Part shown: one piece after another, positions 28,341 through 53,080 of the stretch
How positions within the stretch are numbered: position 1 is the stretch's first letter
Layout of the letters: each line of letters opens with the position of its first letter
Assembly: GCA_047495785.1 (NCBI GenBank)
Contig: JBLDXI010000004.1
Span: 2,356,001 to 2,420,000, forward strand
Direction: 5' to 3'
Origin: Lepidodermella squamata
Lineage: Eukaryota > Animalia > Gastrotricha
Length of the DNA: 64,000 nt
Notes under the pieces: model-generated
What the model saw: only the letters and a program-made list of their open reading frames with translations
The model's database searches: none
Told to the model about the DNA's origin: nothing
Translations under genes and position numbers: made by a program

Positions 28341-29528
28341 GAGCCACTCTTGATCAGATTGCTGCCATAAAAGAATAGAGATATAGGCTCCAGACATAGG
28401 CTCTGAATTATATTCAACTTGAAGAGTAGATGACGCTGACTTGGATTCAATTTACAGCAGCTATTAGACCAAATAACAAACAAATCGATTAGGCAAAGCT
28501 CTACTCAGAAAATATGTTATATTTGTCGAAAATTGATGTCATCGCATTACCTTTAATAGCTCATAGACTGCCAGTCAGATCTTTGAAAAGATATGTGTAG
28601 ATGATCTTCAACAGACCCTCTACATCTGTAAAAGCTTTCAGCCAGTTATGTCACAGAATGAGGCCACGGCAAGCCAGTATTTACAGGTAAGTTTAGGCGG
28701 GTATAAAGTATAAACGACCCATATGAAATGAATATATAAAGTAAATAAAGTTGCTGTTAGAGTCGATTCTGAGCTCTCAGATTTCTTCTATGTTACCAGG
28801 GGACTAAGACAGGGTTGCCCGTTGTCTCCTTTGCTATTCATAGCGACCTTCAACAAAATTTGCGAAAAAATATCTGCTGAAAAATTAGGCTTTCCTATTA
28901 GCGAGACCGCAAACAGCGAGACCGCTATGAGCGAGACTGATTTCCTAAATTTACTAGCGTTTGCGGACGACGGAACACTTTTAGGCATGAACCACGACGA
29001 AATTTCACGACTACTTCACATTTTCGATTTGGCTTGCACCGAATTGGGTCTGAAAATTAACGCGGCAAAAACTCAATATATGATTATTTCTAGAGACGAG
29101 TCAGCTACTCAAAATTACGAATTGGAATTGAACGGGAAAAAACTTGAAAAAGTGACCAAATTTAAATATTTAGGGAGTATTATTACTAGTGACGGCAAAA
29201 TCGATGAGGAACTAAACTACAGAATTTCTAAGGCAGGCAGTGTTTTCGGCGCCATGAACAAATTCATGTGCAACAAAAGTCAGGTTTCCATAGCCACAAA
29301 ACTTAAAGTACTGACATGTGTTATAATACCTACCATCATTTACGCCTGCGAATCGTGGAACATATCGATAGCCCAAGAAAATAGACTAAACACTATAGAA
29401 TATCGATGGCTTCGATCTATAGTAGGTGTCCACCTAATGGACTATATTCCAAATATAGACATTCGACTTGCGTTATGCGGAGGTCTCATTGAAGTGAGCC
29501 GCATTGTTGAAAAACAAAGGCTAAGATA

Positions 29529-32500
29529 TCCAGTAAAAAACCATGCTAGGACATTAATTTGTTTCATTTTGGCAGCTTTGCGCTGAGCAAAAAGGTTTAA
29601 TACGGTTCAAATCACTACCCCTTGAAATTCCCCTCCTAGCCATCTTGGAGGGGAACGTTTTTCGCCCCTCCCCAATCTTCAATGATTGCGCGGACCCAAG
29701 GGTCCAGTTGTTGACAAACTTTTCACTTTTATTTCGATGGCTTAGCCAATACGCGCTGACATTTAAATTATTTCAACGCTTAGAGCATGGTCAGCTGGTC
29801 ATTTTGAGACCAGCCTCGCCGTTGTAGCCCCCGTATTTATGGCGCTAATTATCGCTAATTAGTGCGCAGCGGCGTTCACACACTCACTGAATGTCGGGTT
29901 TTGTCAAATTTTGGACACATGCAGCAGTTCTGTGCGCATATCAAAATAACACTGGTCGACGTAGAATTTCAAGACGAATCGAACAAGCTTAAGATCATCG
30001 TCGTAGCCCTCATAGTTTTGAGCCTATAGGAGGCGCGGTCCATCCACCTTAAAATTTCGAAATTTCGTTGTTTTTCGGAATATTTTCGCGACAGTTTGAA
30101 AGAGACCCTGTGTAACATAACAACCATTTCTAGTACAACATTTGACGGGCTTTCGATCGGTGAAAACCGCATGTCGATGCCTCTCACAGTTTTTTGCCAA
30201 TAAGCCGGGCGGTAAAATGTGAGATAAAAAACACACTTGGTAAATCTCGAAATTTCGCTTCTACAATTCCGGCTCGTGTATACCTGCAGCTTCAATGACG
30301 AATTTTCATGTGATATAGTAGGTAACTTGAGACGCCCTATTAAATGGTAGACACCCTATGTTCACAGGGCACACCCATTTGACGACCCGCCCTTGACAAA
30401 GTAAAAATTTTTCCAATTGTAACTTTACACTCTCATTTCAATTATATAGCCGGTTCGCGCTGATACTTTTAAGATGCCAACACTTGGAGTATAGTCCGCT
30501 GGCCATTTTGAGACCAGGCTGGTCGTTTTAGCCCTCGTATTCATGATGCTATAATACGCGCGGTAAAACTTGGTATGGGCATATTTTGTGTGTGTGCGCA
30601 TGCAGTTAGGCTTTCTCACTTGCATTTTTGACTTTTACGCAATATTTGCGCGCAAGATTAATGGCAGCCGACCTCTTCAGTAAAATGCGACAAATCGAAC
30701 GAGACTAAGCTTGTCTTGCCAGCTATCAGGACTGTTGAGCAAATTTTGTCGTGGTACGGCCTCAAAAATCATCCGAAAATCCAAATTAATATTGTGATTT
30801 TTCGAATTATGCCTATTTTGCACATTCACCTGAAAGATAACTGGCAATATCGTTTGACCTTTTCTAGTGCAGGATTTCACGTTATTTCTTCGCAAGAAAC
30901 CACGCGGTGAATTTATTTTTATATTCAAAGTATTATATGTGCTCTAAATGCTTTAGCATCAAAAACCTGGCGAATTTCACGACAATTGTTTTCAGAATAT
31001 CAAAAAATCTGCGTTTTCCATAAACTTCGCACTGTAGCAGCGGTGGTTACGAGAAAATTACGAGAATATTGTTCTCGCTGCTTACGATATGCAAAATCAT
31101 GTCCTTGAAACCTTTAAAAATTAACAAAGAATCAGCCACTCGTTATATATACGTAATCTGTACACCATTTGATGAAGAACTTTCAGTTCTGTTTTGGAGT
31201 CCCTCCCCTGTTTGAGAAAAATTTGAAACGAAAATCATCATTGCTGAGGATTTTATTATAGGGTAATGAGGGGCCAATTGAAGTGAGGGTTTTATTGAGG
31301 GTAATTAAGGTGCGCGCGCGCCGTCGCCGTTAACCGTGTCATGACCCAGATAATTAGGAGATATATAAAATGATCACGACCTTGCCTACAGTCAAAACTT
31401 GGGATGGGCATTTTTTAAAGGTGCGTACTCTCACTATTAGATAAGTAAAATTATTAGATTAGAAGTATTAGATTGTAAAATTCGCCACTGAACTCGCATT
31501 TGAATATGACCAGCAGAACTGTAGAAGCGATATTTCGAAATTTATTGGGTTTGTTTTTTATCTCAAATTTTACCGGGAGGCATACGGGCAAAAAACGGCA
31601 GCTGATATCGGCTTGCGGTTTTCGCCCATGGATAGCCCGTGAAATGTTATATTAGAAATGGCTAATAAATTAAGCCCGGTCGCTTCCGTATCGTCGCGAA
31701 AACATTCACGAAAACATAAAAATCTCGAAATTTCAAGTTTTAAGGTGGATCAAAACTAGTTCTACCGCGCCTCTTATAGGCAAAAAACTATGAGGGCTAC
31801 GACGATAGGCATATTCTCGTTCGGTTCGTCTTGAAATTCCACCTCGGCCTGTGTAATGTGTATGTGCGCACAAAACTGCTGGTTATCAGAGTCATGACCC
31901 GGTTAACGGCGGCGGCGCACACCGTGATTACCCTCAATATAATTATATTCTGCATAATTAACGACTTGCATTTTATTACCTGGAATTAAGCTAGAACCAG
32001 GGGAATGGACTTGGGCTTATGAGTTTATTTGAACCGTGATCGAAAAATATAAAAATTGTTTTCCAATTTCAAATTTCCAGCAAAATTCTACGTCGTCACA
32101 TGAAAAGTCATTTTCAAGTCAAAAATCATTTTTTTCAATTTTTTTGTCAAAATTTGACCACTTCCAAGGTGTAGAGAGAAAGTATTTCAAGCTATCGAAT
32201 GATATACGATACATACCTATGTGAAACTTGTTTGCATGTAGAGGCGCGGCTCCGATCAAATTTTGACCTTGGCAAAGGGTGTGCTGCCCACAGGGTGCGG
32301 CCTATGAACATGAGGCGTAAACCATTCGATAGGCCGCTTCGAGTTACCTATTGGTTAACAAAATTCGTCAATACAATCCCAGACCCGGAATTGGTAAAGC
32401 AAAATTTCAAATTTTACTTGGTCTGTTTTTATCTCAAAATATACCGCGTGCCTTATTGGCAAAAAACCATGAGGGGTATTGACAAGCGGTTTTCACCATA

Positions 32501-35500
32501 AAATAGCCCGCAAAATGTTGTAGTAGACATGGCTATTATATAACGCCGAGAAGCTTCTACACCGTCGCGAAAAAATTCACAAAAACATTGAAATTTCGAA
32601 ATTCTCAAGTTTTAAGGTGGGTCGAAACAAATTCTACCGCGCCTCATGGGCAGAATACTATGAGGGCTACGACGATGGGCCTAGTGTCGTTCGATTCCTC
32701 GCATTTTTCCGCACATGATGGTTGCAACTAACTTTGCGCACAAATATTACATACAGGTCAAAAATGCAAGTGAGAAAGCCTAACTGCGTGAGTGCGCACA
32801 CTAAAAATACCAAGTATTACCGCGCAGCGAAAAACACCATAACTACGGCGGCCACAACGACCAGCTTGGTCTCAAAATTCTTAGCTGAATAAGCTCTACG
32901 CGTTAAAATTATTAATATATCAGCACAAATTCGCTGAATAAAAAAATGCGAATGCAAAGTTGATCAACAAAATTATGAAAATTTGTCTTGACAAAGGGTG
33001 TGGCGTCAAATGGGTGCGCCCTGTGAATGTGGGGCTTGGACCAGTTGAAGGGGCGCCTTGAGTTACCCATTTCTCATGAATATTTGTAATTGAAGTCGCA
33101 GTTAAAATACACCTAGAATAAAAGAATCGATATTTGAAAATTTACTCAGTTTGTTATTTATCTCATATTAGACCGCGTGGCCTATTGGCAAAAATCTGTG
33201 ATAGGTGTTGGCATGCGGATTTCACCTCTCGAAAGCCCGTCATATTCTGTAATTGACATGGTTATTTTACTAAACCGGGACTATTCCTAATTGTCGTGAA
33301 ATGATTCTCAAAAACGTCGAAATTTCGAAATTTTAAGGTGGATCGGCCGCGCCTCCTATAGACAAAAAACTATGAGGGCTACGACGATGGGCCTAGTGTC
33401 GTTCGATTCGTCTTGAAATTCTACGTCGGCCTACATAATGTCTATGTGCGCACAAAACTGCTACGCGTGTCGGAAATATGACAGAAAACGGCTCTGAGTG
33501 AGTGTGTTAGCGCCGCCGCGCACTAGAAATGAGTTGAAAAACGCGATTCTCCGGGCTTCTATTGCTCGACAACCATGAGCGCTACGATTATGCGGTTGGG
33601 CTCTAAAAATTCAGCGGAAAATTTGCTGCATTTTACGTACATTCAAATACAAGCGCTACCAGAATGAGGTGTCAAAAAAAATTAACAATAGTCGGAAAAA
33701 TTGAAAATTTTACTGCGCAATCAATAGCGCCATAAATAAAAGGGCTACAACGACCAGCCCGGACTCAAATTGGCCAGCCTGCTATGCTCTAAGCGTTAGA
33801 ATCATTAATATAACAGCGCAAATGAAGATAATGATGAACATGTGAGTGCAAAGTTGATAAATGTTAAACAAAATTTACTTTGGCTTGGGCGTGGCATCAA
33901 ATGGGTGCGTCTTGTGAGTGTGAGGCATCAACCATCAAGTAGGGCGCCTCGAATAACCTATGTCTCATGAAAATTCGTCACTGATGTCGCAGTAAAATAT
34001 GACCCGTAAATATAAAAGCGAAATTTCGAATTTTTTTGCGTTGATTTTTATCTCACATTTCACCGCGAGGCTTATATGCAAACAACCGTGATAGGTGTTG
34101 GCATGCGGTGTTCACCGTTCGAAAGCCCGTCAAACTTTGTACGGGAAATAGTTGCTTTATTACACAGGGACTCTTCCAAACTTTCGTGAAAAAAATCACA
34201 AAAACATCGAAATTGTGAAATTTTAAGGTGGATGGACCGCGCCTTCTATAGGCAAATAACTGTGAGTGCTACGGCGATGGGCGTAGTCTCGTTCGATTCG
34301 TCTTGAAATTTTACGTTGGACTGAATGATTTGTATGTGCGCACAAGACTGCTGCATGTGCTTAAAATTTGACAGAAATCAACTCACTGTGAGTGTGCGAG
34401 CGCCGCGGCACGCTAAAAATAGGTTGAAAAATGCGATTTACCGCGCCTCTTGCTGTTCAACAACCATGAGGGCTGTTTTAACGCGGCTGGTCTCTAAAAA
34501 TTCAGCGCAAAATTTGCTACATTCTACGTGCATTCAAATATGAGCGCTACCAGGTTGAGCTGCCAAACAAATTGACAAAAGTCGAAAAAATTGAAATTTT
34601 AATTTTCACTAAAAATCAATCGCGCGCTAAACGCTCTAGTCAGGGGAAATCTGGCGAATCTCGCGGCGGTTTTGGTACCAAAAAATCGGCCATCCTTTCT
34701 AGTATCTAAAAATTTGACTTTGTCACGACAAATTCCGCACCTATCTGGGTGTCATACGCGCCTTGAAAGTTTCACACACAGTTAGTGAGGGCCACTTTTT
34801 CAAGTGCGCACAACTTGTAAATTCAATACAAAATCAATCGTTGATCGTATGAAAATAAAATTTAGACTGTTCGATGCAGAATTTTTCGTAGAAAGTCACT
34901 GATGCAGCCCTCCCCCCAGGGAGGGCCGCCAAACTGGCTTTATATTGACATTTCGAAGAGGCGCATCGCAACGACCAGGCTCTCGCGTGTGATGTAATTA
35001 ACCTCGGTCATGAGGGTGCCGGTAACCGTGACCCAGACGGCGGCGTAAGCAGCTCATGAATATTAATTAGCAGTTGGGTAGTTTTTTATGAATAAAAATT
35101 CGCCACAAATTAACCGCCCGATGAAAACAGCTGGAAAGTTTTTATACAGAGGTTTAAAAAAAGATCTATCTACGACTTATTTTTCCATATTTTTATCGTG
35201 AAAATTCGTTCCCCTAGCTTCGTTTTTCGTCCAGCGCAAAACGCCTCTACCATTGTCGCCTCGACCGGCGAAGTTGAGAGAGAGGCGCTGGACCTCCGGT
35301 TCAGGCTGCGGCTCCGCCGCTAGGGGAACCCTATCGGGTTGGTTCGCGCAATCATCTAGAAAAACGGGGCACCAGCTGCCGGTTGCCGCAAAAATTTTCA
35401 AAATCGGATTATTTTTGGTGAAGTTATTGATGAAATAAGATCGGCCGGTTTTTATTTCCCCCACCCTCCAAACCGGGGTTGAATATCATGTTTTTTAAGA

Positions 35501-38500
35501 AAGATAACTGATGCCTCCCTCCCCCGGGGGAGGGAGGCAGCCGGTAATTCATAAAAATTTTTAACGGCATATAAAAAGTTTCGAGCGCCACTACCTGTTG
35601 CGCTCCTAGCGCTGCCACAGAGCGCGTGAGTTAACAATAGAGCGCCGGTGATTACGCAATAGGTGTCGTGTGCGCGCGCGACCGTCGCGCGCGCGGCGGT
35701 GGTGGCGTACGGCACCGGTGACCTAGCGCCGTTAGGTCAAGTTGTTGCGTCATCGATAAAGCGATTTTTTCGTTTTTAATTCTTTAAAAATCAGCAATTG
35801 ATGCGGAAAAAATGAAAAGTTTCTACCCGCCACTTGAAAGCCTGCCCGATTTTTCGGTATTTTTAGATTTTCTACATGTATCACAGGAATTTCCCTAGCA
35901 AGGTATTCCAAAGCGGCCATAACCCCTTCTGCATCAGCAGTCGCTGATGCGCCGTACTCTGTCGCTTATTGGGGACTTCGTCCCTGTGGGACCTTTGGTG
36001 CGCAACCATCCAGCAATATGGGACACAAGAAATTTTGGATTGATTTGTTGCTCTGGCAGCTAGGCGCTGGGCGTTATAGCTGCGCTTAGGGTAGAGGACA
36101 TCAAACACCCCTTGAAATTCCCCTCCAGGCCGTCTTGGAGGGGAACTTCAGCTCGCCCCTCCCCAAACTTTAATTTTATATTAAATTAAAATTAAAATAT
36201 TACCGAGCAAGACTGTAGGCAAGGTCGTGATCATTTTATATCTCCTAATTATCTGGGTCATGACCCGTTTAACGGCGACGGCGCGCGCGCACCTTAATTA
36301 CCCTCAATAAAACCCTCACTTCAATTGACCCCTCATTACCCTATAATAAAATCCTCAGCCATTATGATTTTCGTTTCAAATTATTCTCAAACACGGGGGA
36401 TTCATACAAAACAGAACTGAAAATCATCTATCGAATGGTATAAAAATTACGTATTTAAAACAATTCCTTGTAAATTTTTACAGTTTTCAAGTACATGATT
36501 TTGCCCATCGTAAACAGCGAAAACAAATTTCTCGTAATTTTCTCGTAACCACCGCTATCCGCTACAGTTACAAAGTTGATGGAGAACGCAGATTTTCAGA
36601 TTTTTTTGAGGCAAAAGTTGTCGTGGAATTCGCCAAATTTATGATGAAACTGTTGGCGCACATATATTTTTCATTTTTGAATATAATTGTCTTCTATGGT
36701 GTCAATATTGCTGGAACAGGGAAGTCATAAATGACTGCAGTTGAAAACAAAAATTATGTTATTAACAGTGTGAAGATTTCTAATTTAAAATCTTCTATTA
36801 ATTTCAACACTCTGTGGTCATACAAAAATCGTAATAATTTTCGATTTAATAACACATCGCCGATTTTGATTTTAGCTTAGAAAGACGGATAGAGCGTCGC
36901 CGTCTGCTAATTCTTTCAATACCAAATTCGTCAATTCTGCACCCAGCATCAGCTCGCTGCCAACTGCTTGGCAGAACCGGTTCAGTGCGTACTAGATCTT
37001 ATTTTCAATTTTTACTGACTTATTTTCAAGCAATTACTGTCAAATTGTTCGTAAAATATTGTAGTGCAGTGGATAGAAAGTTTCGACGACTTCTAAGCTT
37101 GCCTCAATAGCTATCACAGTTGCCAACATTGTTTGGCCCAAAATCGAAGCGTCAACCGCCAGCTTTTCATCTCACATTTTCCCGCGAGCTTTTACGTAAC
37201 GACTTGCGGTTTTTACAGTTGGATAGCTTGTAAACTTTTGTTCAGCCAACGTGTTTTCAAGATTGTTTCAAGGAACACTTCCAGATTGTCGCGAGAAAAT
37301 TACAAAATAAATCAAAATTTCAAAATTTTCAAGTTTTAAGGTTTATCCGCGTAACCCCTTATAGACAAAAAACTGTGAGTGAATGGCGCTTGGCGATTTG
37401 AATGGCGCTAAGCTTGCCTCAATAGCTATCACAGTTGCCGAAATAGTATGACATGAAATCAAACTAGATTTCCAGGAGTCAACCGGCCAGTTTTTTATCT
37501 CAATCTCACATTTTCCCGTGAGGCTTATTGGCTCGAAACGAAGTTAGCTACCGACTTGCGGTTTTTACCGTTGGATAGCTCGTAAAATTTTGGCCGGTCA
37601 ACGTGTTTTCAATTCAGCTGGAACACTTCCAGATTGTCACGAGAAAATTACAAAAAAAATCAAAATTTCGAATTTTTCAAGTTTTAAGGTGGATCAAAGC
37701 AAGTTGAACCGCGCCTCCTATAGACAAAAAACTATGCGTGCTATGGCCATGGGCGTAGTCTCGTTCGATTCCTCGCATTTTTCTGCATAGGGTGGTTCCA
37801 ATTAATTTTGCCCACAGTTATTGCATGCTGGTCAAAAATGCCAAAAAATGAGTCCGCACACAAAGAATATGGTCATACCTAATTTTACTGCGCGATAATT
37901 AGCGCAATAAATACGAGGGCTACAACAACGAGGCTGGTCTCAAAATGACCAGCCAACCATGCTCTAAGCGTTAGAATCGTTTAAACGTCAGCGCGTATTG
38001 GCTAAGCCATTGAAATGAGAGTGCAAAGTTGGTCAACACAATTTAAAAAAATTGACTTTGAAATGGGCGTGGCGTCAGATGGGTGCGGCCTGTGAACGTA
38101 AGGCATGTGCCATCAGGTAGGGCGCCTCGAATAACCTATGTGTCATGAAAATTCGTCACTGGAATCGCAGTTAAATATGACCCGGAATTGTAAAAGCGAA
38201 ATTGTGAAGTTCACCATGTTTGTTTTTTATCTCACATTTTACCGCGTGGCTTATTGGCAAAATACGGTCAGTCGCATGCAGTTAGCACCATTGGATAGCC
38301 CGTGAAATTCTGCATTAGCAACGGTAATCAAATAACGCTAGGACATTTCAAGAACGTCGCGAGAAAATTCACAAAGACATCGAAATTTCGAAATTTTCAA
38401 GTTTTAAGGTGGATCGAAGCGAGATTTACCGCGCCTTCAATACCTTCATAACTATGAGGGCTACGACAATGGGCCTAGTGTCGTTCGATTCGTCTTGAAA

Positions 38501-40462
38501 TTCTACGTCGACCGGTGTAACTTTGATATGCGCACAAAACTGCTGCATGTGTACAAAATTTGACAGAAATCCCCTCTCAGTGAGCGCGTGAGTGCGGCCG
38601 GCGCGCTAAAATATGCTGAGAAACGTGATTTGCCGCGCCTGTTATTGCTCCGCAACCATGAGGGCTACGTTGACGAGCTTGGTCTCTAAAGATCCAGCGG
38701 AAAATTTGCTACATTCTACGTGCAATTAAACATGAGCGCTACCCGGGTGAGGTGTCAAAAAAATTGACGAAAGTCAAAAAAATTGAAATTTTTAATTCCA
38801 CTAAAAATCAACCGCGCGCTAAACGCTATAGTCAAAGGTAATATTGCGAATCCCGTGGCGGTTTTGGTACCAAAAAATCGGCCGTCCTGGCCTCAAAATG
38901 GCCAGCGGACTATGCTCTAAGCGTTGGCATCATAAAAGTATCAGCGCGAACCGGCTATGCCATTGAAATGAGACTGCAAAGTTAGTGGACAATTTAAAGA
39001 AATTTGACTTTGTCAAAGGCGGGTCGTCAAATGTGTGTGCCCTGTGAACATGGCGCGTCTACCATTCAATAGGGCGTCTCAAGTTACCTATACCTCATGA
39101 AAATTCGTCACTCAAGCTGCAGGTAAATATGACCCGGATTTGTAGAAGCGAAATTTCGAGATTTACCAATTGTGTTTTTTATCTCATATTTTACCGCTCG
39201 GCTTATTGGCAAAAAACTGTGAGAGGTATCGACATGCGGTTCTCACCGATCGAAAGCCCGTCAAATGTTGTACTAGAATTGGTTGTTATGTTTCACCGGG
39301 TCTCTTCCAAACCGTCGCGAAAAAATCACAAAAAGAACGAAATTTCGAAATTTTAAGGTGGATCGACCGCGCCTCCTATAGGCAAAAAACTATGAGGGCT
39401 ACGACGATGATCTTAGGCTTGTTCGATTCGTCTTGAAATTCTACGTCGGCCTATGCAATGTCTTTGTGCGCACAAAACTGCTACACGTGTCGAAAATTTG
39501 ACAGAAACCGACTCTCAGTGAGTGTGTGAGCGCCGCCGCGCACTAAAAATAGGTTGAAAAACGCGAATTACCGCGCCTCTTATAGCTCAGCAACCATGAG
39601 GGCTGTGATGACGAGGTTGGTCTCTAAAAATTCCGCGCAAAATTTGCTACATTCTAGGTGCATTCAAACATGAGCGCTACCAGGGTGAGGTGTCAAGAAA
39701 ATTGACGAAAGTCGAAAAAATTGAAATTTTTAATTTCACTAAAAATCAACCGAGCGCCAAACGCTCTAGTCAAAGGAAATCTTGCGAATCTTACGGCGGT
39801 TTTGGTACCAAAAAATCGGCCGTGTTTTCTAGTATCTAAAAATCCGACTTTGTCACGACAAATTCCGTACCTATGAGGGTGTCATACGCGCCCTGAAAAT
39901 TTCACACACAGTTAGTGAGGGCCACTTTTCGGAGAGCGCGCAACTTCTAAAATCAATATAAAATCAACCGTGGGTCGTATCGAAATAAAATTTTGACTGT
40001 TCGATGTAGGATGTTTTGTAGTATGTCCCTGATGCGGCCCTCCCCCCGGGGAGGGCCGCCAAACGGGTTTGTTTTTTAAATTTCAAAAAAACGCACCGCA
40101 ATGATCTGGCTCTCGCGCGTGGCGTAATAAACCTCGGTCATGAGGGTGCCGGTAACCGTGACCCAGACGGCGGCGTAATGAGCTCATGAATATTCATCAT
40201 GAATATTGAAAAATTTATGAATAAAAAATCGCCAAAAATCAGCGGATTGGCCGAACTAGCTGGAAAATCTTTGTTGAGCATTTCGGAAAACGGGCTATTT
40301 TTCGATATTTTTGGTGTATTGGTAGAGTTAAAATTCGTTCCCCTACGAGTTAGCGCAGAAAATTCTCGACATCATACGCCAGCAGTCGGCGTGACACTGC
40401 GCAGTGTATGATTGTAGAGTTGTCGCTACCGCGACAACTGGACCCTTGGGTCCGCGCAATCA
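29529..40462. mobile_element. Large non-coding Helentron/rolling-circle-like modular element, copy 1 (composite, ~10.9 kb)
   Basis: Starts TCCAGTAAAAAACCATGCTAGGAC. Hairpin TTCCCCTCC-N10-GGAGGGGAA at 29628-29655. 29-bp perfect inverted repeat 29683-29711 / 40434-40462. Internal terminus at 35354. Arrays of ~180-bp monomers. Confidence 0.8.
31500..34900 (+). repeat. Higher-order array of diverged ~160-205 bp monomers (also ~37100-40000, 41850-44500, 48850-52600)
   Basis: ACCGCG-anchored blocks at ~32443, 32636, 32819, 33012, 33172, 33346, 33551, 33712, 33903, 34062, 34236, 34440, 34620. Recurrent core AAAAACTATGAGGGCTACGACGATGGGC.TAGT.TCGTTCGATTC. Confidence 0.9.
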
Positions 40463-40553
40463 TCTAGGTCACATAATTAGGTCACGTGACTATGACGCAG
40501 AAGGACTAATACACAAAATATATATTTGGACGCCTCCGCTTGGGTGGTTTGCA

Positions 40554-43500
40554 TCCAGTAAAAAACCATGCTAGGACGTTAATTTGGTTCATTTAGGCAG
40601 CTTTGCGCTGAGCAAAAAGGTTTAATACGGTTCAAATCACTACCCCTTGAAATTCCCCTCCTAGCCATCTTGGAGGGGAACGTTTTTCGCCCCTCCCCAA
40701 TCTTCAATGATTGCGTGAACCGGAACGGTTTTAGCGGCGGCCGCCGCTACTTAATTATCATGTCTCGCGCACGCCGCTCTCGGCGTTATCAATGAGGAAA
40801 AATTGTATGCACTTGACCGCTTCTCCAAGTTAGTTAATAGGATATCCTCGGAAAAAAATATGAAAAATACCATCGTGTAGAGCATACCCGAAAACCTTAG
40901 GTGCAAAGATTTTTCAGAAAGATCGGCCTGACGGCTGATTTGTGGTGATTTTTTATTCATATATGCAAGTGAAGATTTCATGAATATTCATAAGCCCTGA
41001 CCTTCTTTAGCTGGGTCACCGCCGCCGGAATACTCATGACCTGGGTCACTGCTTTATTACGCGTGAGCTCGAAATTTTAATTTGAAATTTGATTTCTGAC
41101 CTCATTTGGGCACATGAAAAAATTCCTCACAAAATTTTCTATCGAACAGTCCTAACCCGGTATTTATCGGATTGATCGGTTGATAACAAAACGGTTGGCG
41201 ATTATTCAAACGTCGAAATTTCACAAAATTAGACTCTCAAAAACCAGGTATAAAATGTTAGACACGCGGGTAACACCCTTTCAGCTGCGGAATTTGTCGT
41301 GTTCAAAGTTTATTTCTAGCTACTCCGAAGGACGGCCGAATTTTTGGTACTAAAACCGCCGCGAGATTCGCTAATTTTTCTTTGACCGCAGCGTTTTGCG
41401 CACGACTGATTTTTAGTGAAAATAAAAATTTCAATTTTGCTGACTTTCGTGAAATATTTGGACACCTTACTCCGATGGCGTTCCAATTGGAACACGTAAA
41501 ATGTAGTAAATTATCCGCTGAATTTTTAGAGACTAGGCACGTCATCATAGGCTTCAAGGTTGTCGAAATATAAGAGGCGCGGCAAAACGCGTTTTTCAGC
41601 CTATTTTTAGCGTGCCGGCGGCGCGCACACAGTCACTCCGAGACGATTTCTGTCAAGTTTTAAACGCTTTTACCTGTTTTGTGCGCACAAATTGAATACA
41701 CTGTTCGATGTAGAATTTCAAGAAGAATCGAACGAGACTAGTCCCATAGTCGTAGCCATCGTAGTTTTGAAGCTATAATAGGCGCGGTTGATCCACCTTA
41801 AAATTTCGAATTGACATTCGGCTTTCACCATAAGATTGCCCATGAAATGTTGTAGTAGGAATAGTTATTATATTACGACGGGATGATTCGGTATGGTCGT
41901 GAGAAGCGTGACAAAAACATCGAAATTTCGAAATTTCCAATTTTTATGGTGGATCGAAACACGTTCTACCGCGCCTCATATACCTAGGCACAAAACTATG
42001 AGTGCTACGATGATGGGCGTAGTCTCGTTCGATTCCTCGCATTGTTCTGCACAGGATGGTTGCAATTAATCTTGCGCTCAAATATTGCATTCAGGTCAAA
42101 AATGCAAGTGAGAAAGCCTGACTGTGAGTGCGCGCACTAAAAATATGCAAAACCGCGCGGTTAATATCGTCATAAATACGGCAGCCACAAAAACCAACCT
42201 GGTCTCACAATTATTAGCTGACAATGCTCTACACGTTAGAATCATTAATATACCAGCGTAAGTTCGCTGAATGAAAAAATGAGAGTGCAAAGTTTGTCAA
42301 CAAATTGAAAAAAATTTGATTCCGAGGGTGTGGCGTCAAATGGGTGCGTCCTGTAAATGTGGGGTTTATACTTTTTATGAGGGCGCCTCCAATTACCTAT
42401 TTCTCATGAATATTCGTAAATGAATTTGCTGTTTAATAATACAGAGAATTGATGGAGCGAAATTTCAAAATTGACTGGCTTTGTTTTTTATCTCAAATTA
42501 TACCGCGTGGCCTTTTGGCAAAAAACTGTGACAGGTGTTGACATGCGGTTTTCACCCCTCGAAAGCCCGTCAAATTCTGTACTTGATATAGTTATTTTAA
42601 TACACCGGGCTATTCCTAATCGTCGTTAAACAATTCTCAAAAACGTCGAAATTTTCAAATTTTAAGGTGGATCGGCCGCGCCTACTATAGACAAAAAACT
42701 ATGATGCCTACGACCATGGGCCTAGTCTCATTCGATTCGTCTTGTAATTCTACGTCGGCGTAAGCAATGTCTATTAGCACACAACACTGCTGCATGTGCA
42801 CCGAAATTGACCGAAATTGACCCTGAGTGAGTGTGTGAGCGCCGCCGGCGCGCTAAAAATAGGCTGAAAAACGCCATTTACCGCGCCTCTTATTGCTCCG
42901 TAACCATGAGGGCTACGATGATGAGTCTGGTCTCTAAAAATTCAGTGGAAAATTTTCTACATTCTAGGTGCATTCACACACGAGCGCTGTCAGAGTGAGT
43001 GTCAAACAAATTGACGAAAGTCGACAAAATTGAAGCTTTAATTTTCACTAAAAATCAATCGCGCGCCAAACGCTCTAGTCAAAGGAAATGTTGCGAATCT
43101 CGCCGCGGTTTTGATACCAAAAAATCGGCCTTGTTTTCTAGTATCTAAAAATCCGACTTGTTCACGACAAATTCCGCACCTATATCTGGGGGTTACGCCC
43201 GCCCTGAAAATTTTACACACACACTTAGTGAGGGCCGAAGCAAAAACTATGAGGGCTACGACGATGGGCCTAGGCTCGTTCGATTCGTCTTGAAATTCTA
43301 CGTCGGCCTGTATTATTGCTATGTGCGCACAAAGCTGCTGCATGAGTTTTAAATTGGACAGAAATCAACTCACTGTGAGCATGTGTGCGCGGCCGGCGCG
43401 CTGAATATAGGCCGAAAAATGCGATTTACCGTGCCTTTCTTATTGTCTAACAACCATGAGGACAAAAATGACGCGATTGGTCTCTAAAAATTCTGCGGAA

Positions 43501-45005
43501 AATTTGCTACACTCTACATGAATTCAAATACAAGCGCTACCAGAGTGAGGTGTCAACAAAATTAACAAAAGTCGAAAAAATTTAAAATTTACCCGCGCGA
43601 TAAATAGCGCCGTGAATAAAAGGGCTACAACGACCAGCCTGGTCTCAAATTGGCCAGTCTACTATGCTCTAAGCGTTAGAATCAATAATATAACAGCGCG
43701 AATGAAGAAAATGATGAACATGAGAGTGCAAAGTTGGTCAACAAAATTAAACAAATTGACTTCGGCTTGGGCGTGGCATCAGATGGGTGTGTCTTGTGAA
43801 TGTGAGGCATGTACCATCAAGTAGGGCGCCTCGAATAACCTATGTCTCATGAAAATTCGTCACTGATGTCGCAGTAAAATATGACCCGTAAATATAAAAG
43901 CGAAATTTCGAAATTTACTTGCTTTGATTTTTATCTCACATTTTACCGCGAGGCTTATAGGCAAACAACCGTGATAGGTGTTGACATGCGGTTTTCACCG
44001 TTCGAAAGCCCGTCAAACTTTGACAGAAATAAACTAAGAGTGAGTGTGTGAGTGCCGCCGGCGCGCTAAAAATAGGTTAAAAACGCGATTTACCGCGCCT
44101 CTTATAGCTCCGCAACCATGAGGGCTACAATAACGCGGCCGGTCTCTAAAAATTCAGCGGAAAATTTGCTACACTCTACGTTCATTCAAACACGAGCGCT
44201 ACCAGGATGAGGTGTTAAAAGAATTGACGAAACTCGAAAAAAATGAAATTTAAATTTTCACTAAAAATCAATCGCGCGCTAAACGATATCGTCAAAGGAA
44301 ATCTTAAGAATCTTGCGGCGGTTTTGGTACCAAAAAATCGGCGGTCCTTCCTATTATCTGAAAATCCGACTGTGTAACGACAAATTCCGCACGTATCTGG
44401 GTGTCATACGCGCCCTGAAATGTTCACACACACTTAGTGAGGGCCACTTTTTCAAGTGCGCGCAACTTGTAAATTCAAGAGAAAATCAACCGTTTATCGC
44501 CTAGCGTCCAAATTTAGACTGTTCGATGCAGAATTTTTCGTAGAATGTCACTGATGCAGCCCTCCCCCAGGGAGGGCTGCCAAACTGGTTTTAAATTGAA
44601 ATTTTGAAGAGTCACTCAGCAACGACCCGGCTCTCGCGTGTGAGCTAATTAACCTCGGTCATGAGGGTGCCGGTAACCGTGACCCAGACGGCGGCGTAAG
44701 CAGCTCATGAATATTAATTAGCAGTTGGGTAGTTTTTTATGAATAAAAAATCGCCAAAAATTAACCGCCCGATGAAAACAGCTGGAAAGTTTTTATACAG
44801 AGGTTTAAAAAAAGATCTATCTACGACTTATTTTTCCATATTTTTATCGTGAAAATTCGTTCCCCTAGCTTCGTTTTTCGTCCAGCGCAAAACGCCTCTA
44901 CCATTGTCGCCTCGACCGGCGAAGTTGAGAGAGAGGCGCTGGACCTCCGGTTCAGGCTGCGGCTCCGCCGCTAGGGGAACCCTATCGGGTTGGTTCGCGC
45001 AATCA
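40554..45005. mobile_element. Modular element, copy 2 (~4.45 kb)
   Basis: Same left end and hairpin; right end GGGAACCCTATCGGGTTGGTTCGCGCAATCA; inserted at A|TCCAG inside the LINE ORF. Confidence 0.85.
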
Positions 45006-46894
45006 TCCAGAGGTAGACCTCGAACCAGATGGATCAACGGAGTGCATAGAAGCCTTATTAAAGTAGGTCTTACTAAGGAAATTCGCCGGAAAAAGAAAAC
45101 CAATAAGGAAAATAAGGTCAAGGATAAGAAAAATAAAACCGCTAAGAAACGAGAAAATAGAAAAAATCCCGGCGAAAAGGATTTTGAGATCAAAATTATT
45201 CCCGATGTCCAACTAGCGGAATCGGTTTCTTTCGAAAAAGATGAATGGCGCATGGTTGTAAACTCGATTGAAAATTACGAATTCTATACAAAAAGCAGAA
45301 TCCTCGACTGTGGGGGTGGGTGAGGATCATTCTTCGCCTGCCTTCGCCCTCTTCAAAACCGGAAACGGTACACGACGCTCAGTCTCGAAGAGGCAAAATA
45401 AAACTATTATTATTATTATTATGAAATGAATTATCTGTAACCAATCGAAATAAGGCTTTGAGTTCAGAAGACATTTTTTCCTTCGACCATTTCTTTTGGT
45501 GATAACAAGGAAAAAAACGGCAACCCAAGGCGATGCACAGCTATGGCCAGGTAATTGCGCCAAAATTGCCCCATGGAAAAATCATATATGGGGGCGAATT
45601 GGTCATTTGGTTTAATTAGTCTATTTTATTATTACAACCTTTTTTTGAGACCTCCGCATAGAGCCAGTCCTCCGATTTTTTTTCGTGACTCAACAGTGTC
45701 TGCCACTGGGAAAAAATTGCGAAAAAGTGTACGCCAATCTGGAAATTTTTCGTTTTTTTCGCTAAGCTGCGAAGCTGTACATTGCTTCGAAGTTCGAAAA
45801 TTCGCGAAACTAGTAAATATGCGATTGAAAAATCACAGATGCTATTTTTCCTAAGCCTGATGTCTTCAGTGCTTTTCTAGGGGAGTAAGGAGTAAGGTCT
45901 CTTATATTGTCTTTCATAAAATCAGGGGAAAAATAGGAGTTGGATGCGAGCGAAGCGAGCCGATTTTTCGGCCATACGCCTCTGTAAATGCGAAAAATGG
46001 GCATCTCGAAGCTGCTTTTTTCTCTAAACAGGAACGAATTTTAGGTATATTTCCAACTTCCTTCCGGACAGAGATTCCAGATTCCAGATCATTGAAAATT
46101 GGGTCTAATGAGAATGGGAACTGTTGGCTTAAGAGAATGGAAAATAAAAGGAAAATGGATATCAGCGAGCGAAGCGAGCAAAATTTTCGATAGAAAAGCT
46201 CGAAAATTGCGAATTTGTAACTCGAGAAATCCTCAATCCTGGCTGGCTTCTTAAGGTCTTGAAAGTGTACGCCGATTAACTATACCCCTACCCATTTTCT
46301 CAACGGTTTTAATAAGGAATATTTTTTTGTGTCTGCCACTGAGCGTGGTCCAGTGGGCAAAAATCGGAACACTGCATAGAGCCAGCCTTATGTCTATGTT
46401 TGGAATGTAGTCCACCTACTATTGATCGGAGCCAACGATATTCTATAGTGTTTAATCAGTTTTCTTGGGCTACCGATATGTTCCATGATTCGCTCGCGTA
46501 AATGATGGTAGGTGGTAGGTATTAAGCTACCCAATCCGCCCCAAGCCCCAAAACACCTGCCCAATTTCCCCCATACCTGGGGCGAATTGGGATACATGAA
46601 TTTTTGCAATCAGGACCCTTGGAAACCTGTAAATATGCATTTTTTCACTGCCTAACTTGCAACTTCAAACGATTAAAGGTAATTTCGTACCCGTATTTTC
46701 GTAACACAGTCATTTCGTAACAAAGTAGTGATTTTTCATAACAATTTCAGTGACTAGCCGCTTTTACACTACACCATTCGAATGGTAAACGATGGTAAAT
46801 GATGGTAATTACTCGATTGTTATATAACAGTGATTAGCTTGCTTTTATTTGATTTTAACGTTTTTTATCGCTGCTATGAGAGAACTAAAAAGAA

Positions 46895-49800
46895 TCCAGT
46901 AAAAAACCATGCTAGGACGTTAATTTGGTTCATTTGGCAGCTTTGCGCTGAGCAAAAAAGTTTAATACGGTTCAAATCACTACCCCTTGAAATTCCCCTC
47001 CTAGCCATCTTGGAGGGGAACATTTTTCGCCCCTCCCCAATCTTCAATGATTGCGTGAACCGGAACGGTTTTAACGGCGGCTAATTATCATGTCTCGCGC
47101 ACGCCGCTCTCGGCGTTATCAATGAGGAAAAATGGTATGCACTTGACCGCTTCTCCAAGTTAGTTAATAGGATATCCTCGGAAAAAATATGAAAAATACC
47201 ATCGTGTAGAGCATACCCGAAAACCTTAAGTGCAAAGATTTTTCAGAAAGATCGGCCTGACGGCTAATTTGTGGCGATTTTTTATTCATGTATGCAAGTG
47301 AATATTTCATGAATATTCATAAGCCCTGACCTTCTTTAGCTGGGTCACCGCCGCCGGCATACTCATGACCTGGGTCACGGCTTTATTACGCGTGAGCTCG
47401 AAATTTTAATTTGAAATTTGATTAATTTAATTTAATTTCTGACCTCATTTGGGCACATGAAAAAATTCCTCACAAAATGTTCTATCGAACAGTCCAAACC
47501 CGGTATTTATCGGAGTGATCGGTTGATAACAAAACGGTTGACGATTATTCAAACGTCGAAATTTCACAAAATTAGACTCTCAAAAACCAGGTATAAAATG
47601 TTAGACACGCGGGTAACACCCTTTCAGCTGCGGAATTTGTAGTGTACAAAGTTGATTTCTTGCTACTCCGAAGGACGGCCGATTTTTGGTATTAAAACCG
47701 CCGCGAGATTCGCTAGTTTTCTTTTGACCGCAGAGTTTTGCGCACGATTGATTTTTAGTGAAAATAAAAATTTTCTAGTCCCATTGTCGTAGCCATCGTA
47801 GTTTTGAAGCTATAATAGGCGCGGTGGATCCACCTTAAAATTTCGAAATTTCGAGGTTTTTTTTACTTTTTTTACGACGATTTGGAAGAATTTCGGCTTT
47901 ATATAATACGCGTGTCTAGTGCAAAATTTGTCGGGCTTTCGAATGGTGAAAACCGCATGTCAATAACTTTTACAGCGTTCCCAGCCAGTGATCCGCGCGG
48001 TATAAACTGAGATAAAAAGCATCCAAATTATCTTTTGAAATTTCAAATAATTGATTCTGGAAGATTATTAGCTGCGACAGCAGTGACAAACATAAATGAG
48101 GAGTAGGTAACATCCTCTTTAATTTTTTAAGGTCACGCGCAAAACTTGGGATGGGCATTTTTTAAGGGTGCGTACTCTCACTATTAGCATTGTCACTTCG
48201 AATTTCGACCAATATGCCATCCTTGTGCACGAGATCGATGGCTCCAATCCTATACAGAAAAATCCTATACAGAACGACTAAGCACGACCTGCTAGCTATC
48301 ATATCGTTAGCGTCGTTGAATAACTCGGATTTTGGCTTGTTTACATCCATTTCGATTTGATAGGTGACAAGTAAAAAAGGCACCTTTTGTTTTGTCCTCT
48401 TTAAAGATAAAAAAGCCGCACTTTACTTGTCACCCGTGACCTTGAAACGGATGTAAACAAGCCTAAATCCGAGTTATTCAACGACGCTAACGATATTAGT
48501 AGCGAAGTTATTTCGGTCACAAAAGTCCGAAAAAATCGAGATTACTCAAATTTCAAAAAAATATTCCGGAATACTACAAGCGCTCTCTCTCTCATCTCAC
48601 AAGACGGTTTTTTTTTTAAATTTTCTTGAAGTTGGTCACTTTTACGAAATATCGCCATTTTAAGAGTCTTTCAGGGCGGTAAACTTATTGAGGAAAAATG
48701 TTGAAAATTTCAGGAAAATCATTTTATCCACGATCAGAATTTTCTCTATCCGGCGATATAAAACTTGTCCAATAAATATTTTTTACCGATTTTCCGATTT
48801 TTTCATCCTGGTAAAATTCTCATGTTGTTAGATCTCCTTCAACTAACATACACGTTCTACCGCGCCTCATATAGGCACAAAACTATGGGTGCTACGACGA
48901 TGGGCGTAGTCTCTTTCTATTCCTCGCATTGTTCTGCACATGATGGTTGAAATTAATCTTGCGCACAGATATTGCGTACAGGTAAAAAAAAGCAAGTGAG
49001 TGCGCGCACTGAAAATATGGCTATCCAAGTTTTACCGCGCGATGAATATCGTCATAAATACGGCGGCCACAGAGACCAGCCTGGTCTCAAAATTGTTAGC
49101 TGACAATGCTCTACGCGTTAGAATCATTCATTTACCAGCGTAAGTTCGCTGAATGAAAAAATGAGAGTGCAAAGTTTGTCAACAAAATTTAAAAAATTTG
49201 ACTTTGACAAGGGGTGCGGTGTCAAAAGGGTGCACCCTGTGAATGTGGGGCTTATACCATTTTAAAGGGCGGCTCGAGTTACCTAGTTTTCATCAAAATT
49301 CGTCGCTGATTACCCGGAATAAAAGAAACGAAATTTCAAAATTTACGTGCTCTGTTTTTTATCTAATAATATACCGCGTGGCCTATTGGCAAAGAACTAT
49401 GATAGGTGTTGACATGCGGTTCTCGCCGCTCGAAAGCCCGTCGAATTCTGTACTAGAAATGTTTGTTTTGTTAAACCGGGACTATTCCTAATCGTCGTGA
49501 AATGATTCTCAAAAACGTCGAAATTTCGAAATTTTGGATCGGCCGCGCCTCCTATAGACAAAAAACTATGAGGGCTACGACGATGGGCCTAGTGTCGTTC
49601 GATTCGTCTTGAAATTCTACGTCGGCCTATATAATGTCTATGTGCGCACAAAACTGCTACGCGTGTCGAAAATTTAACAGAAAACGGCTCTGAGTGAGTG
49701 TGTGAGCGCCGCCGCGCACTGAAAAATTGGTTGAAAACGCGATTTGCCGCGCCTTCTATTGCTCGACAACCATAAGCGCTACGATTATGCGGTTGGGCTC

Positions 49801-52800
49801 TAAAAATTCAGCGCAAAATTTGCTACATTCTAGGCGTATTCAAACATGAGCGCTACCAGGGTGAGATGTCAAAACAATTGGCGAAACTCTAAAAAATATA
49901 TAATTTGATTTTCAGTAAAAATAAATCGCGCGCAAACTGCTTTAGTCGAAGGAAATATTGCGAATCTCGCAGCGGTTTTGGTACCAACAAATCGGCCATC
50001 TTTTCTACTATCTAAAAAACCGACTTTGTCAAGACAGATTCCACACCTATCAGGGTGTCACACGCGCCCTGAAAATTTCACACACCGGGTATAACGACCA
50101 GCCTGGTCTCAAAATGGCCAGCGGACTTTGCTCTAAGCGTTGGCATCATAAATGTATTAGCTCGAACCAGCCATACCACTGAAATGAGAGTGTAAAGTAA
50201 GTTGAAAATTTAAACAAATTTGACTTTGTCAAGGGCGGTTCGTCAAATGGGTGTGCCCTGTGAACATAATATGGCGTCTACCATTCAATAGAGCGTCTCA
50301 AGTTACCTCTATCTCATGATTATTCGTCACTGAAGTTGCGGGTAAATATGACCTGGATTTGTAGAAGCGAAATTTCGAGATTTACCAATTGTGATTGAAC
50401 ACGGGCGTCACCGGCAGCACATTTGATGTCGAAAATCCGTTTTTGTTCAATTTTAGTGCCAAAATTTGAATATTTTGACAAATAACAGCTCCAGGATATA
50501 GCAAATAACTCAAGCTATCAAATAACATGAGATACATATACCGTAAATTCCGAAATACAAGCCCAGGCGGCACTCTTTGTCGGCACTTTGATGTTCTTTG
50601 TATTGCCGCCAGGGCTTGTATTTGAACATTTACGGTATTTGAAACTTGTTTGCCCGTTGGCGCGGCCCTGCTCAAAATTTGACCCTGGCAAAGGGTGTGC
50701 TGTCGAATAGGTGCGCCTCGTGAAAGTGTACCGTTCGATAGAGCGCATCGAGTTACCTATTTCTCATGAAAATTCGCAACTGAACATGCTGTTAAAAAAG
50801 ACCCAGAATCGGGCAAGCGAAATTTCAAAATATGCTTAGTTTGTTTTTATCTCAAATTTTACCGCGTGGGCTACGAGCAAAAAACGGTAGCTGATATTGA
50901 CTTGCGGTTTTCACTGTAGGATAGCCCGTTAAATGTTGCACTAGCAATGGAAATTAAATAACGCCCGGACGCTTCCGTATTGTCGCGAAAAAATTCACAA
51001 AAAATCGAAATTTCGAAATTTTCCAGTTTTAAGGTGGATCGAAGCAAGATTTACCGCGGCGCTTATACGCAAAAAAAAACATAAGGGCTACGACGATGGG
51101 CCTAGGCTCGTTCGATTCGTCTTGAACTTTTACGTCGGACTGAATGATTTGTATGTGCGCACAAAGCTGCTGCATGTGTTTTAAATTTGACAGATATCAA
51201 CTCACTGTGAGCGCGTGAGTGCGGCCGGCACGCTAAAAATAGGTTGAAAAACGCGATTTGCCGCGCCTCTTATAGTGCAACAACCATGAGGGCTACAATG
51301 ACGCGGCTGGTCTCTAAAAATTCTGCGCAAAATTTGCTACAATCTAGGTGCAATTAAACCTGAGCGCTACCCGGGTGAGGTGTCAAATAAATTGACGATA
51401 GCCGAAAAAATTGATATTTTACCGCGCGATAAATAAGTAGCTCCATAAATAAAAGGGCTAAAACGACCAGCCTGGTCTTAAATTGGCCAGCCTACTATGC
51501 TCTAAGCGTTAGAATCATTTATATGACAGCGCGAATGAAGAAAATTAGGAACATGAGAGTGCAAAGTTGGTCAACAAAATATAAAAAATTGACTTTGGCT
51601 TGGGCGTGGCATCAAATGGGTGTGTCTTATGACTGTGAGGCATGTACCGTCAAGTAGAACGCCCCGAATAACTTATGTCTCATGAAAATTCGTCAATGAA
51701 GTCGCAGTGAAATATGACCCGTAAATATAAAAGCGAAATTTCAAAATGTACTTGCTTTGATTTTTATCTCACATTTTACCGCGAGGCTTATAGGCAACCA
51801 ACCGTGATAGGTGGTGACATGCGGTTTTCACCGTTCGAAAGCCCGTCAATTTTTGTACTAGAAATGGTTGCATTATTACACAGGGACTCTTCCAAACTGT
51901 CGCGAAAAAATTCACAAAAACAACGAAATTTCGAAATTTCGGAATTTTAAGGTGGATAGACCGCGCCTTCTATAGAGAAATAACTGTGAGTGCTACGGCG
52001 ATGGGCGTGGTCTCGTTCGATTCGTCTTGAAATTTTACGTCGGACTGAATTATTTGTATGTGCGCACAAGACTACTGCACGTGCTTAATATTTGACCGAA
52101 ATCGACCCTGAGTGTGTGTGTGTGAGCGCCGCCGGCGCGCTAAAAATAGGCTGAAAACGTGATTTGCCGCGCCTCTTATAGTGCAACAACCATGAGGGCT
52201 ACAATGACGCGGCTGGTCTCTAAAAATTCTGCGCAAAATTTGCTACAATCTAGGTGCAATTAAACCTGAGCGCTACCCGGGTGAGGTGTCAAATAAATTG
52301 ACGAAACTCGAAAAAATTGAAATTTTAATTTTCACTAAAAATCAAACGCGCGCCAAACGCTATAGTCAAGGGAAATCTTGCGAATCTCGCGGCGGTTTTG
52401 GTACCAAAAATTTGGCCGTCCTTCCTAGTATCTAAAAATCCGACTTTGTCACGACAAATTATGCACCCATCTGGGTGTCACACGCGCCTTGAAAATTTCA
52501 CACACAGTGAGTGAGCGCCACTTTTTCATGTACGCGCAACTTGTAAATTCGATAGAAAATCAACCGTTTATCGCCTATCAACAAAATTTAGACTGTTCGA
52601 TGCAGAATTTTTAGCAGAATGTCGCTGATGCAGCCCTCCCCCCAGGGAGGGCCGCCAAACTGGTTTTATATTAAAATTTCGAAGAGGCGCATCGCAACGA
52701 CCCCGCGCTCGCTTGTGAGGTAATTAACCTCGGTCATGAGGGTGCCGGTAACCGTGACCCAGACGGCGGCGTAAGCAGCTCATGAATATTAATGAGCAGT

Positions 52801-53080
52801 TGGGTAATTTTTTATGAATAAAAATTCGCCAAAAATTAACCGCCCGATGAAAACAGCTGGAAAGTTTTTATACAGAGGTTTAAAAAAAGATCTATCTACG
52901 ACTTATTTTTCCGTATTTTTATCGTGAAAATTCGTTCCCCTAGCTTCGTTTTTCGTCCAGCGCAAAACGCCTCTACCATTGTCGCCTCGACCGGCGAAGT
53001 TGAGAGAGAGGCGCTGGACCTCCGGTTCAGGCTGCGGCTCCGCCGCTAGGGGAACCCTATCGGGTTGGTTCGCGCAATCA
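46895..53080. mobile_element. Modular element, copy 3 (~6.2 kb)
   Basis: First ~870 bp nearly identical to copy 2; same right end; inserted between A and T. Confidence 0.85.
48301..48496. repeat. ~195-bp foldback (MITE-like) inside copy 3
   Basis: ATATCGTTAGCGTCGTTGAATAACTCGGATTT.GGCTTGTTTACATCC..GTGACAAGTAAA and its reverse complement. Confidence 0.75.

Follow-up and report, generated by a model that had tools for sequence, protein, structure and literature searches.

The question raised by a 64,000-nucleotide stretch of the genome of the gastrotrich Lepidodermella squamata (assembly GCA_047495785.1, contig JBLDXI010000004.1, positions 2,356,001 to 2,420,000; here called the window) is what kind of transposon inserts with base precision at a motif that resembles its own tip. 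An original prediction, made from the letters of the window alone, described a family of giant non-coding elements between positions 29529 and 53080 that enter the site A|T(CYAG), the bar marking the point of insertion. It left the choice between a divergent rolling-circle family and a tyrosine-recombinase (Crypton-like) family. The layout of the ends, and a terminal sequence shared with copies that lie beside a Rep-helicase (RepHel) gene, make it very likely that the window contains five non-autonomous members of a Helitron2/Helentron-type (group 2) rolling-circle lineage. Genome-wide comparison of the flanks confirms A|TCNAG as the insertion site.

Elements of the window and their ends

The plus strand of the window holds five elements, at 29529-35354, 35355-36008, 36009-40462, 40554-45005 and 46895-53080. 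Six junction regions were read. On this strand the elements start with TCCAGTAAAAAACCATGCTAGGAC and end with ..GCGCAATCA, and the outer flanking bases are A29528/T40463, A40553/T45006 and A46894/T53081. The ends and outer junctions quoted in the original prediction are present as it gave them, but the end that it called the start is the 3' end in gene orientation. The TCCAG end is therefore referred to below as the right terminal sequence (RTS, 3' in gene orientation) and the GCGCAAYCA end as the left terminal sequence (LTS, 5' in gene orientation). The canonical element is obtained by reverse-complementing the one first described. It reads 5' TGRTTGCGC .. CTRGA 3', is inserted at CTNGA|T, and lies on the minus strand of the window, an orientation adopted because the gene direction and the Helitron2 definition agree on it.

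A motif scan of the window found two junctions inside the first copy, 35354|35355 and 36008|36009 (..GGTGCGCAACCA|TCCAGCAAT..). The segment 29529-40462, 10.9 kb in all and first counted as one copy, is therefore made up of three stacked elements with lengths of 5826, 654 and 4454 bp (A|B|C). One internal junction had been predicted at 35354; it exists, but its exact position is 35354|35355, and the second one had been missed. The term giant is to be read as 4.4-6.2 kb per element, the 10.9-kb one being a stack. The features are as follows.

29529-35354, minus strand: element A, 5826 bp, non-coding, with the RTS at 29529 and the LTS at 35354; ends read directly, copies found in the genome
29529-29711, minus strand: RTS module of element A, with terminal TCCAG (CTGGA| in canonical orientation), G/C hairpin and 3' subterminal inverted repeat, from alignment and folds
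31500-35210, no strand assigned: internal imperfect repeats of element A, spacing about 0.55-0.95 kb, 60-95% identity, with a G/C palindrome per unit
35355-36008, minus strand: element B (mini element), 654 bp, starting TCTAGAAAAACGGGG and ending GGTGCGCAACCA, head-to-tail between A and C
36009-40462, minus strand: element C, 4454 bp, with a third RTS subtype that starts TCCAGCAATATGGG and keeps the conserved hairpin, and with the LTS and terminal inverted repeat at 40434-40462
40554-45005, minus strand: element E2, 4452 bp, non-coding, with the RTS module at 40554-40721, the subterminal repeat at 40708-40721 and the LTS at 44992-45005
46895-53080, minus strand: element E3, 6186 bp, non-coding, inserted at the non-consensus site agaA|TTAAA inside another repeat

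The prediction that the elements are non-coding is borne out, as no open reading frame (ORF) of at least 120 amino acids was found inside them. All of the elements are filled by imperfect internal repeats, each with a G/C palindrome, which form families D1-D20 with spacings of 548-952 bp. Arrays equivalent to that of element A are found at about 37270-40340, 41800-44860 and 49030-52940. TRF found nothing in these repeats because their periods exceed 500 bp, which is beyond its sight. Arrays with a period of about 650 bp, built from mini units of the element B type, are present elsewhere in the genome.

The tips themselves are not inverted repeats. Instead, an inverted copy of the final 14-29 nt of the GCGCAATCA end is found 155-180 nt in from the TCCAG tip. 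In the stack A-B-C the last 29 nt (40434-40462) are the exact reverse complement of 29683-29711 (29/29 nt), and in E2 the inverted match between 40708-40721 and 44992-45005 is 13/14. Between the subterminal repeat and the tip, about 100 nt from the TCCAG tip, there is a G/C hairpin with a 9-bp stem (29628-29655) that folds better than 200/200 shuffles (z -3.2). An alternative hairpin can form in the same module at 29648-29672. The 9-bp stem is conserved across the three RTS subtypes, and the LTS hairpins of element C have a z of -5.0. These results agree with the end structure originally described, namely no terminal inverted repeats, a subterminal inverted repeat of the opposite end, and a GC hairpin about 100 bp inside one end. 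In gene orientation the layout is the terminal inverted repeat TGRTTGCGC.. (LTS), satellite-like internal repeats, the matching subterminal repeat, a conserved G/C hairpin and finally some 100 nt of tail with CTRGA as its last bases (RTS). The terminal and subterminal inverted repeat together with the hairpins match the definition of Helitron2 (PMC3627910, PMC11417382).

The insertion site

The flanks of the family show a strong preference for a short motif. The 121-Mb assembly, which consists of 151 contigs, was searched with 172 bp of the TCCAG end (32 matches) and with 141 bp of the LTS end (31 matches, twelve of them at 100% identity). An A precedes all 26 of the 26 complete TCCAG ends, and every other flank position is unconserved. 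For the LTS side, all ends of three LTS types were collected from the fetched loci and duplicates were removed, giving 37 distinct junctions. Another element's RTS tip abuts 14 of these, one is an internal repeat, and 20 are independent free ends. The free ends are followed by T in 19/20 cases and by TCNAG in 15/20 (TCCAG 7, TCAAG 4, TCTAG 3 and TCGAG 1). The remaining five read TTAAA (twice), TTAGA, TTGAA and CTAAA. There are no common bases beyond position +5. As background, TCNAG is found at 0.37% of the positions in the window and at 0.8% of AT sites, and the enrichment at free LTS ends has a P of about 5e-33, or about 1e-28 given AT. Genome-wide, GCGCAAYCA followed by TCNAG occurs 69 times, and the reversed control gives 0 hits; in roughly 45 of these 69 cases the junction is stacked on a mini element.

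The insertion site is confirmed as A|TCNAG, which is CTNGA|T in gene orientation. The target-site logo is not one of random flanks. It upholds both the A|T site and the likeness of the target to the element's own end (TCNAG in the flank, TCCAG at the tip), while the degenerate base is N rather than Y. The left junction has the element's own TCCAG in 25/26 copies, whether the right motif is TCAAG, TCTAG, TCGAG or TTAAA. This combination of a constant left TCCAG with a variable right motif indicates that the right motif reflects a preference for target DNA and not a duplication. A 6-bp duplication (ATCCAG) was rejected on the same grounds. A boundary moved so that the element would end in ..CAATCATCNAG, as in CTRR, was rejected as well, since every left flank would then have to carry ATCCAG.

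Three empty sites were recovered from paralogs of the repeats that the elements interrupt. The first two lie in a copy of a long interspersed nuclear element (LINE), of which the following parts were compared.

29129-29528, plus strand: left part of the LINE copy, target DNA whose last base is the A of the first A|T target, with over 40 paralogs (85-100% identity)
40463-40553, plus strand: middle part of the LINE copy, 91 bp between two insertion sites, fully identical to the closest paralog (L074, on contig C55)
45006-45405, plus strand: right part of the LINE copy, with all paralog alignments beginning at query base 2; its first base, T45006, is C in 12/12 paralogs examined

At site 1 the uninterrupted LINE paralogs read ..ggctaagRtA|TCTAGG.., and the three LINE pieces rejoin with zero gain or loss of bases; the TCTAG after stack A-B-C is therefore target DNA. 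At site 2 all of the 12 paralogs, L074 included, read GCA|CCCAG, while the window reads GCA|..|TCCAG. L074 is identical to the window over the 91-bp middle piece and differs from it at about 3 of 890 flanking bases. At site 3, where E3 is inserted, paralogs of the flanking repeat read ..agaa|ttgaa.. and ..caa|ttaaa... Because they carry ttRaa, the TTAAA next to E3 is also target DNA, and this junction is a genuine non-consensus site. Judged by the three empty sites, the elements entered between A and T and neither added nor removed bases, an outcome that would look identical in sequence to a 2-bp AT duplication.

The interrupted repeats have some features of their own. The LINE copy is split by the insertions into 28822-29528, 40463-40553 and a third piece from 45006 to at least 45431. 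The LINE family is very young: its more than 40 copies have identities of 85-100%, and many reach 97-100%. The repeat flanking E3 is short (46745-46894), of unassigned type, and is found again in inverted orientation at 53915-54053, 0.8 kb downstream. It also occurs at L086:6142-6237 and L087:2095-2186, between the Rep/OTU and helicase pieces of the two gene-bearing copies described below, where it is probably intronic or a small insertion.

Gene-bearing copies and relation to known lineages

Genome scans for Pif1 and GIY-YIG domains found a weak Pif1 match and a GIY-YIG match directly beside two TCCAG ends, one on contig C60 and one on contig C64.

C60, plus strand: gene-bearing copy, with Pif1 at 410036, GIY-YIG at 411655 and the reverse complement of the TCCAG end at 412333-412484
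C64, 715136-717582: gene-bearing copy, mirror arrangement of that on C60

The two loci (L022 on C60, L020 on C64) share 99% identity over the first 1.65 kb counted inward from the RTS, and their flanks are unrelated. The terminal 150 bp at the TCCAG end are 88-91% identical to the window elements, with divergence beyond, and the shared RTS lies about 260 bp downstream of the Rep-Pif1-GIY-YIG gene. Since gene-bearing copies share this 150-bp RTS beside a Rep-Pif1-GIY-YIG gene, the family appears to be a non-autonomous derivative of a Helitron2-like lineage. RepHel-encoding copies of the kind to which the original prediction had looked for evidence do therefore occur as far as the RTS is concerned. 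The shared RTS and the A|TCNAG logo favor the first of its two proposals, a divergent rolling-circle family with one short motif in its own end and in its target.

The gene is described from separate pieces, since the parts or exons of the transposase ORF were searched individually. The domain scores of the ORF pieces are 37.6 bits for GIY-YIG and 46 bits for Pif1. In the C64 copy an upstream piece of 415 residues has EFQ..G..HVH and, 190 residues on, YLVKY, which are signatures of Helitron Rep. A BLASTP comparison of this piece with the Rep encoded on contig C9 was not significant, though the HUH blocks align. A third gene-bearing copy, on contig C29, has a TCCAGAAAAACGGG-type RTS about 600 bp past the GIY-YIG domain, and this RTS abuts the LTS of the next element. 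Because the C29 copy ends in this type of tip, the mini-type end belongs to the same lineage. LTS-type ends are found 25.0 kb (C60) and 23.7 kb (C64) from the RTS, in the right orientation, and they are 100% and 99% identical to those of the window. In the C60 copy the piece at L086:4869-5564 (G000:C60:407368-408063) resembles an OTU cysteine protease by eye; no Pfam family matched it.

Other Helitron-like genes of this genome were considered as partners and rejected. There are at least 41 matches to Helitron_like_N genome-wide, from several distinct RepHel families and many with long open frames, but no strong match lies near the ends of the window family. The USP-type RepHel on contig C9 (L085) has no DNA similarity to the window elements, and its protein family is absent from loci with these ends. 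The canonical Helitron loci L061-L072 likewise have no DNA similarity to the window elements. The C9 locus (G000:C9:1105000-1113000, minus strand 2335-7881) belongs to a different Helitron-like family whose DNA is unrelated to the window elements; its open frame of at least 1849 amino acids (2403 by genome search) combines Helitron_like_N and Pif1 with a C-terminal ubiquitin hydrolase (UCH). Rolling-circle elements that seem intact are unusually numerous in this small animal genome. About 393 kb beyond the window, at G000:C4:2812803-2835527, a Pif1 match (2832678-2833094) lies between mini arrays (2813085-2815412) and a mini unit (2835106-2835513), and the mini elements there abut a family member at 2835513-2840668.

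The family has most of the features of group 2 Helitron-like elements (HLE2). In the definition of Helitron2, one repeat forms the very 5' tip and its partner lies at the 3' end together with a hairpin (PMC3627910), and HLE2 insertion is described as occurring between T and T, or between TTTT and T/C (PMC11417382). A marker of RepHel proteins in the HLE2 clade is DUF6570. With Helitron2/HLE2 (Bao and Jurka 2013, PMC3627910; HELIANO, PMC11417382) the present elements share a 5' T start, a 5'-tip inverted repeat with a 3' subterminal partner followed by a hairpin, hairpins near the 5' end, and the absence of a target duplication. They also share a RepHel gene that reads from LTS to RTS, with a HUH motif and two tyrosines in Rep and a Pif1-type helicase fused to it (here from exons searched apart), and non-autonomous copies with common terminal sequences. 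They differ in inserting at CTNGA|T (A|T) rather than at T|T or TTTT|T/C, and in the distance of the 3' repeat from the tip, which is about 155-180 nt here and 20-60 nt there. The hairpin, at about 100 nt from the tip, is also farther away than described. In addition, the transposase ends in a GIY-YIG nuclease, and its Rep is too divergent for the Pfam cut-off.

Non-autonomous Helentrons (HINE, DINE-1 and the oyster Cg_HINE; PMC4067079, PMC7492417) are similarly gene-less, with subterminal inverted repeats, a 3' palindrome, central tandem repeats like satellite DNA and no target duplication. They insert in T-rich DNA (PMC4067079, PMC7492417), with a variable number of T, whereas a defined 6-nt motif is used here. 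Most are shorter than 3 kb, compared with 4.4-6.2 kb for the present elements, and their partners have an AP endonuclease. This domain is C-terminal in Helentrons in the narrow sense; a GIY-YIG domain is found in its place here. FoHeli1 and FoHeli2 of Fusarium (PMC5148889) also belong to group 2, have a target motif longer than a dinucleotide (TNAT|) and form occasional tandem copies. Their motif is a different one, and the paper does not report that it equals their own tip or that stacking is systematic. A Helitron-like clade of Paramecium (PMC13085455) shows apparently sequence-specific integration and satellites between LTS and RTS, but its targets are telomeric repeats at chromosome ends and it forms another protein clade.

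Canonical Helitrons (HLE1) share insertion between A and T without duplication, and their 3' tip CTRR resembles the CTRG(A) found here. They have a 5' TC, lack inverted repeats and carry their hairpin some 11 nt away from the tip; no preference beyond AT has been described. The present elements instead have 5' TGRTTG and 3' CTRGA tips, inverted repeats, and a hairpin at about 100 nt. A GIY-YIG domain in an HLE2 is mentioned once in passing (PMC11417382); a literature search for Helitron and GIY-YIG found nothing more specific, and found no description of a Helitron-like element whose target equals its own tip. The present family combines the layout of Helitron2 with a GIY-YIG partner and with insertion at A|T inside a 6-nt motif that mimics the element's tip.

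Proposed mechanism, alternatives and significance

The nick motif is present at three places: at the left junction, where it comes from the flank, at the right end, where it comes from the element, and in the target. The simplest interpretation is that one HUH nick specificity would define origin, terminator and target. Rep would nick single-stranded DNA after CTNGA, and strand transfer at the shared motif would add or lose nothing. Non-autonomous copies would be moved in trans, and the GIY-YIG domain possibly cuts the second strand or branched DNA. Because the LTS has T as its first base and the RTS has CTRGA as its last bases with a T behind it, a resident copy remains a target at either of its junctions, and so does each place where an RTS meets an LTS. 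New copies would therefore land at old ends and produce head-to-tail stacks such as A|B|C and the 654-bp mini arrays.

A comparable logic is found in the bacterial HUH elements IS91 and IS608, in which a short target abutting one end doubles as the cleavage site, with one specificity and no duplication. In IS608 the site is recognized through base pairs formed with an internal guide of the element. Those elements differ from the present ones in being prokaryotic, in having no helicase fusion and in being unrelated in sequence. We tentatively propose that the Rep of the GIY-YIG lineage could be a sequence-specific nickase that uses the 6-nt CTNGA|T as origin, terminator and target, that the elements could seed and extend their own head-to-tail arrays, and that integration through a paired intermediate may overwrite the base adjacent to the nick, as hinted at by position 45006.

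Several observations weigh against the Helitron2-type assignment or the nick-and-join mechanism. The A|T target departs from the T|T rule of group 2. In the Rep piece of the C64 copy the Pfam match to Helitron_like_N lies exactly at the HUH motif but is below threshold (E 0.033), and phmmer found nothing for this piece among solved structures. In the C60 copy the 8.3 kb that precede the helicase contain no recognizable Rep piece, and a Pfam search for Rep there gave just the OTU-like piece and Pif1; this copy may be Rep-deleted, unlike its C64 twin. The gene and the LTS are linked by coordinates only (C60:387458-412484 and C64:715136-738811), with no full autonomous copy read. In addition, the LTS-proximal 1.5 kb of the two copies are 82% alike, compared with 99% on the RTS sides, and because of this low identity a stacked neighbor could own that LTS. 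The subterminal repeat is degenerate in the gene-bearing copies. Unequal crossing-over, instead of repeated insertion, could account for the growth of the mini-element arrays.

Also on this side is the base T45006, the first after E2, whose counterpart in L074 lies at 1990-1996 and which is C in every LINE paralog examined. Plain nick-and-join does not predict such a change. The chance of a private substitution at this very base is about 0.3-0.4%, unless the insertion picked a rare variant. Insertion itself, or a later event, may have rewritten this target base beside the nick. Three possible sources of the change are gene conversion at a later time by stacked junctions, in which CTGG-A-TGATTG is shared, pairing over a 1-nt overlap in the course of integration with repair towards the base of the element, and a template switch at microhomology.

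Three other explanations of the junctions were weighed. It is improbable that the family has no real target preference and that TCNAG is the leftover tip of a neighbor, resulting from read-through, truncated stacks or recombination between copies, with arrays arising by ordinary satellite expansion. Many junctions are indeed stacks, including the roughly 45/69 TCNAG junctions that abut a mini element. However, in LINE paralogs without insertions the two sites already read TCTAG and CCCAG, free flanks share nothing past +5, and TCAAG and TCGAG never occur as the element's own tips. Still less probable is a cut-and-paste or other element that duplicates AT, in which the true element would be CCAG..CAATC with an AT at either side. 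All of the junctions are compatible with this parsing, and the empty sites do not differ between the two interpretations. The true tips of such an element would lack terminal inverted repeats, though, and the gene linked to these ends is RepHel, with no DDE gene linked to them. Furthermore, the stacked junctions share a single A and T, and the target at site 2 reads AC while both of its junctions read AT, which a fill-in duplication would not give.

The tyrosine-recombinase alternative of the original prediction has very little probability indeed. Here a circular intermediate with ..CAATCA-TCCAG.. would recombine with targets that share the core ATCNAG. The absence of target-site duplications and the resemblance of the target to the joined ends are consistent with it, and the T at +1 of site 2 looks like the element's version of a mismatched core, which heteroduplex in the overlap could produce. 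Crossing-over in the core would carry target bases to the left junction, yet the element's own TCCAG is retained there in nearly all copies, regardless of the right motif. The terminal/subterminal repeat and hairpin are the Helitron2 layout, and the gene identified by the shared end is Rep-Pif1-GIY-YIG, although no genome search aimed at tyrosine recombinases was made. A rolling-circle lineage of the Helitron2 type thus accounts best for the ends, the linked gene and the target.

The family has implications for annotation and for transposon biology. Annotation rules that assign A|T to group 1 and T|T to group 2 would miss a lineage that breaks them, or would place its boundaries incorrectly. 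The elements form a clean natural data set on nick-site choice by a eukaryotic HUH transposase, and they illustrate a simple way for a transposon to build head-to-tail arrays and satellite-like DNA. A short defined target with base-exact, scar-free insertion is also a property sought in enzymes for site-directed integration. If the proposal of a nickase specific for the 6-nt motif is true, the family would be a eukaryotic counterpart of the IS91/IS608 logic and would provide a direct route from transposon to satellite DNA.

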